In this document: positions 16,637 through 37,474 of the stretch, in pieces
Layout of the letters: each line of letters begins with the position of its first letter
Numbering within the stretch: position 1 is the stretch's first letter
Source: Macrostomum lignano
Taxonomy: Eukaryota
Assembly (NCBI GenBank): GCA_002269645.1
Contig: NIVC01004705.1
Span: 1-37,474 of the forward strand
Reading direction: 5' to 3'
DNA: 37,474 bases
Position numbers and translations under genes: made by a program
The notes under the pieces: generated by a model
The model's input: only the letters and a program-made list of their open reading frames with translations
Told to the model about the DNA's origin: nothing
The model's database searches: none

Positions 16637-16761
16637 ATGTTGCCGAAGCGGCAGACTTGGCTTTCTGCCAGCGCTGTGTGGATTTCAATTCTGGCTGCTG
16701 CTCAACTGATGCAGCTGTGCTCAGCTGGTTCCAGCAGCAAGAAAACCAAGGAGATACCTGT
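16637..16761 (+). CDS. Exon 1: signal peptide ([31 protein letters not shown]...)
   Basis: ATG, basic n-region and hydrophobic h-region. Phase-2 donor GTGAGC at 16762 matches the phase of exon 2. Confidence 0.8.

Positions 16762-37474: not shown

Follow-up and report, generated by a model that had tools for sequence, protein, structure and literature searches.

What does the gene-sized region beginning at position 16637 of contig NIVC01004705.1 (NCBI GenBank assembly GCA_002269645.1, filed under Macrostomum lignano) encode, where Cys-rich open segments alternate on the + strand with repeat-filled gaps? The window analysed here is the whole stretch of 37,474 nucleotides (nt), and a preliminary description drawn from its letters had proposed a giant secreted polymer protein of SCO-spondin-like build with an unfamiliar repeated core. 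Our data suggest that the region holds the 5' part of a gene (21 exons, at least 3,209 codons) that probably encodes a giant secreted glycoprotein paralogous to the flatworm adhesive protein ap2, a lectin-mucin block copolymer forming a gel or film in mucus or footprints. The product is most likely a gel or footprint glycoprotein, a function that we infer from its architecture and from its orthologue.

The gene is multi-exonic and starts with an ATG at 16637, the same start that had been proposed from the letters; its frame continues to the window end at 37474, so the gene is not complete in the window. Exons were modelled with a small dynamic-programming gene finder that combines codon log-odds with GT/AG splice-site scores and masks tandem repeats. 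In the unmasked model, several intronic microsatellite arrays that are open in all frames appeared as false exons, and tandem-repeat masking removed them. The resulting 21 exons are joined by canonical GT-AG introns throughout, and the model is collinear with the uncharacterised M. lignano 'VWFD domain-containing protein' UniProt A0A1I8GJ02 (P0067 in our searches; 65% identity over 1,335 amino acids, aa). Exon junctions 1-11 are further covered by a gap-free alignment (71% identity) to P0217, which is encoded by an intron-less Logan contig of 3,038 nt assembled from RNA-seq run SRR13614416; this cDNA alignment set the exon 7 acceptor to 21908 instead of 21836. Published M. lignano peptides place on exons 1, 2, 4, 5, 6, 9, 10, 11, 12, 15, 19, 20 and 21. 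The hydrophobic N-terminal core that follows the ATG is a predicted signal peptide. A conceptual, stop-free product of 3,209 aa emerges once three 1-nt indels are repaired, which bears out the earlier estimate of more than 3,200 aa for the repaired frame only, since the frame as assembled is broken at those three indels. The features of the gene are as follows.

16637..16761, + strand: exon 1, start codon and putative signal peptide (gene model; the exon 2 junction matches the P0217 cDNA and the M. lignano peptides LKETPITGR/SGWCIVTLQR)
17680-17922, 18558-18733, + strand: exons 2-3, EMI-like Cys pattern, then EGF (EGF_2 E=4e-5; P0217; peptide QLSLQTYIR identical in M. lignano)
20039..20206, + strand: exon 4, conserved six-Cys module ('TB-like'), kept in P0217 and in the M. 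lignano peptide NNPNEQYCYSDDACLTK
20715-20917, 21220-21600, 21908-22193, 22703-22943, + strand: exons 5-8, D1, VWD1-C8-TIL/E (Pfam VWD, C8, TIL, VWF-E)
23488-23995, 25945-26109, 26650-26893, 27327-27772, + strand: exons 9-12, D2 (VWD2-C8-TIL) and the TIL' of D' (Pfam VWD E=2e-37, C8, TIL)
28610-28757, 28859-29025, 29475-30126, 31084-31512, + strand: exons 13-16, E', D3 (VWD3-C8-3-TIL-3/E-3) and LDLa1 (Pfam VWD 7e-29, C8 9e-16, TIL 7e-13)
31991-32107, 32277-32399, 32492-32617, 32688-32779, 32888-32950, + strand: exons 17-20 and the start of exon 21, LDLa2-5 and the first Thr stalk (Pfam Ldl_recept_a; collinear with A0A1I8GJ02)
32951..34440, + strand: repeat unit 1, with domain A at 32951-33463, a Thr/Pro stalk, domain B at 33761-34269 (a G missing near 34106) and a Thr stalk
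34441..35909, + strand: repeat unit 2, with A at 34441-34953, a stalk, B at 35230-35738 (a T missing after 35339) and a stalk
35910..37386, + strand: repeat unit 3, with A at 35910-36423 (an extra T at 35926), a stalk, B at 36700-37212 and a stalk
37387..37474, + strand: start of repeat unit 4, the first 29 aa of domain A, where the gene runs off the window

Exon 21 begins at 32888 and stays open to the window end, while exons 9-12 are collinear with A0A1I8GJ02, with P0217 and with P0016, the product of a second contig. Thirteen of the 20 introns (window 16762-32887) are dominated by a mini- or microsatellite of their own (periods 4, 6, 10, 11, 12, 15, 16 and 23 nt), and tandem repeat makes up 72% of total intron bases.

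The N-terminal part of the product, about 1,680 residues, is rich in recognisable domains. Pfam identified three VWD domains (E values including 2e-37 and 7e-29), three C8 domains, at least three TIL domains and a VWF E-module, together with an EGF domain (EGF_2) and five LDLa domains in five stretches (Ldl_recept_a, E=2.7e-26), in agreement with the EGF insertion and LDLa cluster of the preliminary description. Because the segment from TIL' to TIL-3 (query residues 4-460) aligns to residues 773-1229 of VWF and to the D3 assemblies of MUC2, MUC5AC and MUC5B as well as to FCGBP (E ~1e-125), we read the layout as the D1-D2-D'D3 module of VWF and gel-forming mucins. The best database match of the VWD3-TIL-LDLa portion was an Asterias rubens 'SCO-spondin-like' protein (476 bits, 40% identity, 99% coverage), with vertebrate mucins ranking lower, which upholds the SCO-spondin-like N-terminal order that had been proposed. 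The EMI-like and TB-like labels fared less well: both P0217 and M. lignano peptides preserve the EMI-like Cys pattern (GWC...), and that of the TB-like module is conserved too, but a Pfam search at E<=10 returned no relevant match on either stretch, so both are kept as motif-level resemblances only. A GDPH motif stands at the start of VWD3 (window 28859-28900; about residue 1142 before and 1118 after the exon 7 correction) and is conserved in A0A1I8GJ02 and P0016. GDPH is the autocatalytic cleavage site of MUC2, MUC5AC and FCGBP.

Downstream of the LDLa cluster the protein changes character. At least 3.1 near-identical tandem units, with starts at 32978, 34468, 35938 and 37414 and periods of 1490, 1470 and 1476 nt, each hold two domains of 171 aa, A and B, in that order; the stalk behind A measures 92-99 aa (76% Thr, 10% Pro) and the one behind B 57 aa (74% Thr), an organisation that matches the array of Thr stalks and paired globular domains first noticed in the letters. 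Homology between A and B themselves extends over their full length (25% identity, E=4e-9), and both contain four Cys, of which the first lies at the start, the middle two form a CxxxxxxC pair and the last sits in a terminal GCF. Cys residues thus stand at position 5 and at 166/167 of the 171 aa, and the modules end in IQIGIYGC and IQVSMLGC. The stalks are of PTS type (57-99 aa, 74-76% Thr), and the 1,520 aa of repeat region within the window contain no CysD-type (10-Cys) module. The three full unit copies differ by one substitution and six indels, namely one of 21 nt, two of 3 nt that keep the frame and three of 1 nt. Between near-identical copies, such an excess of indels over substitutions looks more like consensus error than decay, and we regard errors of this sort in a long repeat as the likeliest source of the three frameshifts.

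Relatives of this core proved scarce. A word-indexed protein database queried with A plus B yielded no homologue, in a collection where all matches were shorter than ~1,000 aa and giant proteins may be missed. An exhaustive search of 1.84 billion representatives gave 189 matches, one of which was real: A0A1I8GJ02, at E=2.5e-22 on domain B. The remaining matches hit the Thr stalk only and were dismissed as low complexity. A scan of metagenome contigs with domain B found no relatives, and neither tblastn nor a hidden Markov model of A/B detected anything in the Asterias locus. Among the relatives found, the core therefore appears restricted to Macrostomum-type flatworms, as the label 'lineage-specific' had implied.

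Its closest relative is also the most informative one. Given 65% identity to A0A1I8GJ02 versus 28% to the N-terminus of M. lignano ap2 (Mlig-ap2), the window gene is the orthologue of the former and a paralogue of the latter. A0A1I8GJ02 shares the collinear exons and carries, after LDLa5, a B-type module (51-52% identical to B of the window), then a Thr stalk and one more module from the same family. It differs in that its post-LDLa part is short (the transcript is 7.9 kb), opens directly with the B-type module and has no near-identical A-B tandem array. The UniProt model of this protein is itself truncated; both of its ends are in the wrong frame, and a faulty join lies within the B-type module. 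Where the model reads ...SANSAEDVATSTTTT the measured peptide is SANSAEDVATCSNNFIECASIGGLGLQTNR, and where it ends in LSVFAHK the peptide is LSVFGCFEK. Two other intron-less sequences, from environmental or transcriptome contigs, match the N-terminal region, P0016 (a JGI contig of 1,502 nt; 47-66%) and P0217 (71%), and indicate that the gene exists in further flatworm-like organisms. The 65-71% identity to A0A1I8GJ02 and P0217 points to a macrostomid flatworm as the source of the window, probably a Macrostomum other than the sequenced M. lignano line.

Evidence of expression comes from this orthologue. Mlig-ap1 and Mlig-ap2 make up the glue of M. lignano (Wunderer et al. 2019, PMC6410801). Dataset S2 of that study, a mass spectrometry (MS) survey of footprints, has an entry of its own, apart from Mlig-AP2, for a VWD protein whose 7,877-nt transcript is unnamed, with 16-19 peptides (PMC6410801). 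Many of these peptides are exact substrings of A0A1I8GJ02, including peptides of the B module such as LSIISSTPGLITSIQLYK, and others cover stretches missing from the UniProt model. The length of '2,625 aa' given in Dataset S2 equals the transcript length divided by three and is therefore a frame translation, not the true protein length. We rejected the idea that the footprint protein is a part of ap2, given its separate listing and the fact that the peptide-matched A0A1I8GJ02 is only 28% identical to ap2. Because the peptide matches in footprint MS are exact, the orthologue is expressed and ends up in surface-deposited material, which agrees with the mucus or adhesive role guessed at the outset. 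Six tryptic peptides specific to the window were absent from the examined parts of the M. lignano MS tables, which fits a different source species but does not decide the matter.

How close is the window gene to ap2 itself? Mlig-ap2 is a protein of 14,794 aa with an N-terminal part of VWD, TIL and LDLa domains, a central region of 21 repeats of 255 aa and 25 repeats of 221 aa, and C-terminal TSP1 domains (PMC6410801); it is glycosylated (PNA-positive), and its function has been proven by RNA interference (RNAi; PMC6410801). Homologues in Macrostomum have in common an N-terminus with two or three VWD and one to five LDLa domains, and the large central repeats of ap2, which binds to surfaces, have been described as having no recognisable domain and an 'enigmatic' function (PMC8621496). 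Like the window protein, Mlig-ap2 combines an N-terminal VWD/C8/TIL/LDLa region with central repeats made of a module and a Thr-rich stalk, and the two proteins align over 1,080 collinear residues (28% identity, E=1e-91) from model residue 538 onwards. In the published sequence (PMC6410801 SI), RP-1 is a Cys-bounded module of ~150 aa (VCKKKMAFDSNVL...RVTLEVKVC) followed by a Thr-rich basic stalk, and RP-2 likewise a Cys-bounded module (VCLRKSVKLFESGELPSDALTK...SVRAELKAC) with a stalk; the two are 28% identical. In a joint alignment with A and B, the terminal Cys, one invariant Pro and an LRP/LLP motif coincide, whereas ap2 has LSxxxLExx at the site where A/B carry the internal CxxxxxxC. Mlig-ap2 further carries several unique modules in the stretch from LDLa to RP-1, among them one with the ending ...IQLEINGC. 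When A and B were compared with these post-LDLa modules by direct BLAST, the match reached no better than E=0.04 and lay on the C-terminal motif ...IQ.E/G..GC. The two proteins also differ in several respects. Mlig-ap2 has two separate arrays (21 copies of RP-1, then 25 of RP-2) instead of alternating A-B; its modules are basic and have no internal disulfide pair; its N-terminus is not recognisably like the EMI-like/EGF part of the window protein; and its role has been shown by RNAi, whereas the role proposed for the window protein is predicted from sequence.

The joint behaviour of A/B and the ap2 repeats suggests what these modules may be. For comparison we assembled an alignment of F5/8-type-C (FA58C) domains from neuropilin-1 b1, factor VIII C2, factor V C2, lactadherin C2, the DDR1 discoidin domain and the Asterias FA58C of locus L001, whose non-starfish members were verified end to end against PDB chains (~2.2 bits per residue). 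A merged profile (A6) of six sequences from the A/B family and the ap2 repeat modules matched this alignment along the whole domain, at E=5.2e-4 over 137 columns by profile comparison and, in local hhalign, at E 4.9e-5 over 152 columns with a score of 36.5; shuffled profiles scored 10.4 +/- 1.9 (maximum 19.5), and 0 of 250 reached 36.5 (z=13.9). The ap2 modules alone (A5) matched FA58C at E 0.011-0.017 on a C-terminal motif. Since merging unrelated sequences should dilute a profile, yet the merged match strengthened, we consider it likely that A/B and the ap2 repeat modules are very divergent discoidin (F5/8-type-C) domains. This interpretation is consistent with the Cys residues at both ends of A and B, the ...GC ending and the size of ~150-160 aa, which fit the FA58C pattern and point to a terminal disulfide of discoidin type.

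Several results pull away from a discoidin assignment. The A/B family alone (A1) reached only E 0.03-0.04 against FA58C, with N-terminal motifs in register and 2 of 300 shuffles attaining the score, and A/B matched the ap2 modules at E 0.07-0.11 over 53-54 columns, a score attained by 1 of 200 shuffles. Pfam at E<=10 returned no relevant match for A, B, B', C', ap2 RP-1 or RP-2, and a profile search of PDB sequences with A/B, also at E<=10, returned nothing. AlphaFold2 (AF2) predicted B, from a four-row alignment, as an all-beta fold of low confidence (pLDDT 54.6, pTM 0.55), and Foldseek retrieved with this model mostly sandwiches of the galactose-binding-domain-like type, namely CBM32, F5/8-type-C, discoidin II, fucolectins, CBM61, APC10 and the Eph ligand-binding domain, at TM scores of only 0.3-0.47; the model of A was poor (pLDDT 37.8) and was left out of the fold search. 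Two statements of the preliminary description need adjusting in this light. The discoidin-like domain placed after the LDLa cluster, whose family gives a clear profile match to FA58C only once merged with the ap2 modules, is not a separate domain, being the first copy of the repeated core. That core is unfamiliar insofar as it has no Pfam or PDB sequence match, yet it appears to be a remote relative of discoidin domains and its design recurs in the described Mlig-ap2. We would thus describe it as a discoidin-plus-mucin-stalk array of the ap2 kind.

If the product behaves as VWF and gel-forming mucins do, its D1-D2 region would assist disulfide-linked multimerisation through D3 in the secretory pathway, and autocatalytic cleavage at GDPH within VWD3 is possible. 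To judge by composition, the stalks, at ~75% Thr, would be densely O-glycosylated and would act as extended, hydrated spacers. The putative discoidin-like beta-sandwiches of A and B could, by analogy with their family, offer many weak sites for glycans, lipids, surfaces or partner proteins. Such a multimerised, hydrated and cross-linkable polymer would be suited to serve as a component of mucus or footprints.

A number of observations weigh against the proposed gel or footprint glycoprotein. The three 1-nt indels (near 34106, 35339 and 35926) interrupt the open reading frame; the window ends at 37474 inside the array, and the C-terminus, together with any dimerising CTCK or TSP1 repeats, lies beyond it; the VWF-type CGLC motif was not found in the model; and the peptide evidence concerns the orthologue A0A1I8GJ02, not the window locus itself. 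Because footprint samples also hold tubulin and other cellular proteins (PMC6410801), finding a protein in them is no proof that it plays a structural or adhesive part. It is unlikely, though the point deserves some weight, that the protein is instead a secretion of another gland system (frontal, rhabdite, cement or shell glands) or an egg coat unrelated to substrate contact: such secretions are generically mucin-like in their architecture, the samples behind the footprint MS are complex, and PNA labels the frontal glands of M. lignano too (PMC6410801 SI Fig. S6 legend), but 16-19 peptides in surface-collected material favour release to the substrate. We see rather less chance that the locus is a decaying pseudogene, or its array an assembly artefact, such that no giant protein is made. 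Three frame-breaking indels within 4.6 kb, and units that are >99.5% identical and hard to assemble, would be expected under that explanation; against it, six indels versus one substitution suggest consensus error over natural decay, the 20 exons upstream are undamaged and have canonical GT-AG borders throughout, and the orthologue was found as protein.

The remaining alternatives concern which known gene this might be. Identity with ap2, that is, an orthologue of the surface-binding glue of the duo-gland system and not a separate paralogue, is very unlikely in our estimate, despite a common plan of two or three VWD domains with TIL and C8, one to five LDLa domains and long tandem repeats (PMC8621496, PMC6410801), similar unit sizes (A plus stalk ~270 aa versus 255 for RP-1; B plus stalk ~228 aa versus 221 for RP-2) and, in both repeat types, Cys-bounded modules followed by Thr stalks. 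The window protein is only 28% identical to the N-terminus of Mlig-ap2 but 65% identical to A0A1I8GJ02, a separate entry of M. lignano; the protein matching A0A1I8GJ02 is listed apart from Mlig-AP2 in the MS data; the N-terminus of Mlig-ap2 is unlike the EMI-like/EGF start, so that the BLAST match begins only at residue 538; and the ap2 repeats are strongly basic and have no internal CxxxxxxC. A true flatworm SCO-spondin orthologue with a neural or internal fibre role like that of Reissner's fibre seems to us the least probable of all. It would account for top matches named 'SCO-spondin-like' and for the order of EMI-like region, D1-D3, LDLa cluster and discoidin-like domain, which agrees with that of SCO-spondin (PMC7333891). 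Peptides of the orthologue occur, however, in externally deposited footprints; no TSP1 or SCOR repeats were seen within the 3,209 aa; the Macrostomum paralogue with TSP1 and a cystine-knot-like end is ap2, not the window gene; and P-vulgata_3, which has the same N-terminal plan, is a pedal-mucus protein (PMC7333891).

We therefore retain a giant secreted ap2 paralogue as the preferred interpretation. A wider proposal, offered tentatively and with odds well against it, is that the A/B modules and the ap2 central repeats are one ancient discoidin-derived module; that footprints are built from paralogous discoidin-mucin block copolymers of SCO-spondin-like ancestry; and that the window protein is an overlooked third component of footprints or mucus, whose lectin-like modules would cross-link O-glycans of the Gal-beta1,3-GalNAc type on its own stalks and on those of ap2.

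Flatworm temporary bioadhesion is a model for reversible glues, and Macrostomum appears to carry a second giant protein built on the ap2 plan. When the two families are set side by side, a remote discoidin signature comes to light in each, which makes the binding chemistry of the modules testable. The comparison also links flatworm secretions to echinoderm adhesives with canonical discoidin domains and to the SCO-spondin-like pedal mucus of limpets, and supports the notion that the SCO-spondin N-terminal module is an old scaffold for secreted polymers. In annotation, the gene deserves a flag as one that short-read assemblies and gene callers cut short.

The DNA of the window is eukaryotic and rich in tandem repeats, and no tRNA or Rfam family was found in it. 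Directly upstream of the gene lies a 7.7-kb satellite (8337-15993) with a 31-nt unit, CAAAACTGACATCTGGGATAGATGGCGCCAA, in ~257 copies and with a 59-nt higher-order period; a 28-nt variant of this unit forms a small array at 6402-6687. A 15-nt repeat, GCACCAGGGGCGCCA, occurs in arrays both between genes (3631-3981) and in intron 16 (31567-31859). On the minus strand, 4513-4812 is an isolated open segment with a PAS domain (Pfam PAS_9, E=1.8e-10), which we take to resemble the N-terminal PAS domain of EAG/ERG-type (KCNH) potassium channels and which probably belongs, as an exon, to a neighbouring gene that runs on the opposite strand. Positions 1-2400 form a C/T-skewed low-complexity block (GC skew -0.66) with repeats of the CTCC and CTCTCCCTTC types.

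How does the window gene compare with known systems? Chordate SCO-spondin begins with an EMI domain, followed by three VWD assemblies, an LDLa cluster and a discoidin domain. By Pfam order, the window protein likewise has three VWD-C8-TIL assemblies and then an LDLa cluster; its start bears an EMI-like Cys pattern, and the module after the cluster is a putative, very divergent discoidin domain. The Asterias SCO-spondin-like locus continues this series, with a VWD/LDLa gene, more LDLa exons, an open PTS stalk of ~2,000 aa, a bona fide FA58C domain (matches to neuropilin and factor V/VIII at ~1e-15) and then a gene with LDLa and TSP1. At 34600-43383 of this locus (L001, LR699106.1) the annotation is split in three genes, and the middle, 731-aa product has no Pfam domain and overlaps the PTS stalk; the split annotation suggests one large SCO-spondin-type gene. 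The starfish locus thus shows that flatworms are not alone in placing a mucin stalk beside a discoidin domain downstream of the LDLa cluster; what sets the window gene apart is that its module has been amplified and has diverged to an extreme degree. Identity to these proteins is at most 40%, a single canonical FA58C domain there stands against an amplified, divergent A/B array here, and the TSP1/SCOR repeats and CTCK of SCO-spondin were not seen within the window.

With VWF, MUC2, MUC5AC, MUC5B and FCGBP the window protein shares the D1-D2-D'D3 layout (D'D3 over ~457 residues, E ~1e-125) and stalks of PTS type; it differs from VWF and the gel-forming mucins in that its PTS region is broken up by the LDLa cluster and discoidin-like modules and has neither CysD nor CGLC. 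Sea-urchin Nectin, with tandem discoidin domains, and sea-star Sfp1, with VWD and discoidin domains, are both secreted temporary adhesives. By description they resemble the window protein as secreted adhesives with discoidin domains and are set apart from it by discoidin domains that are canonical and detectable with Pfam and by having no mucin stalks between them. The limpet pedal-mucus protein P-vulgata_3 has three vWFD domains, C8, TIL and five LDLa domains, corresponds to the 'first third of SCO-spondin' and is expressed in the pedal sole (PMC7333891). Compared by description only, it displays the N-terminal plan of the window protein in a secreted adhesive mucus (PMC7333891), but is 1,604 aa long with no repeat core described. 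Set beside these systems, the window gene and ap2 look like derivatives of an SCO-spondin-like ancestor.

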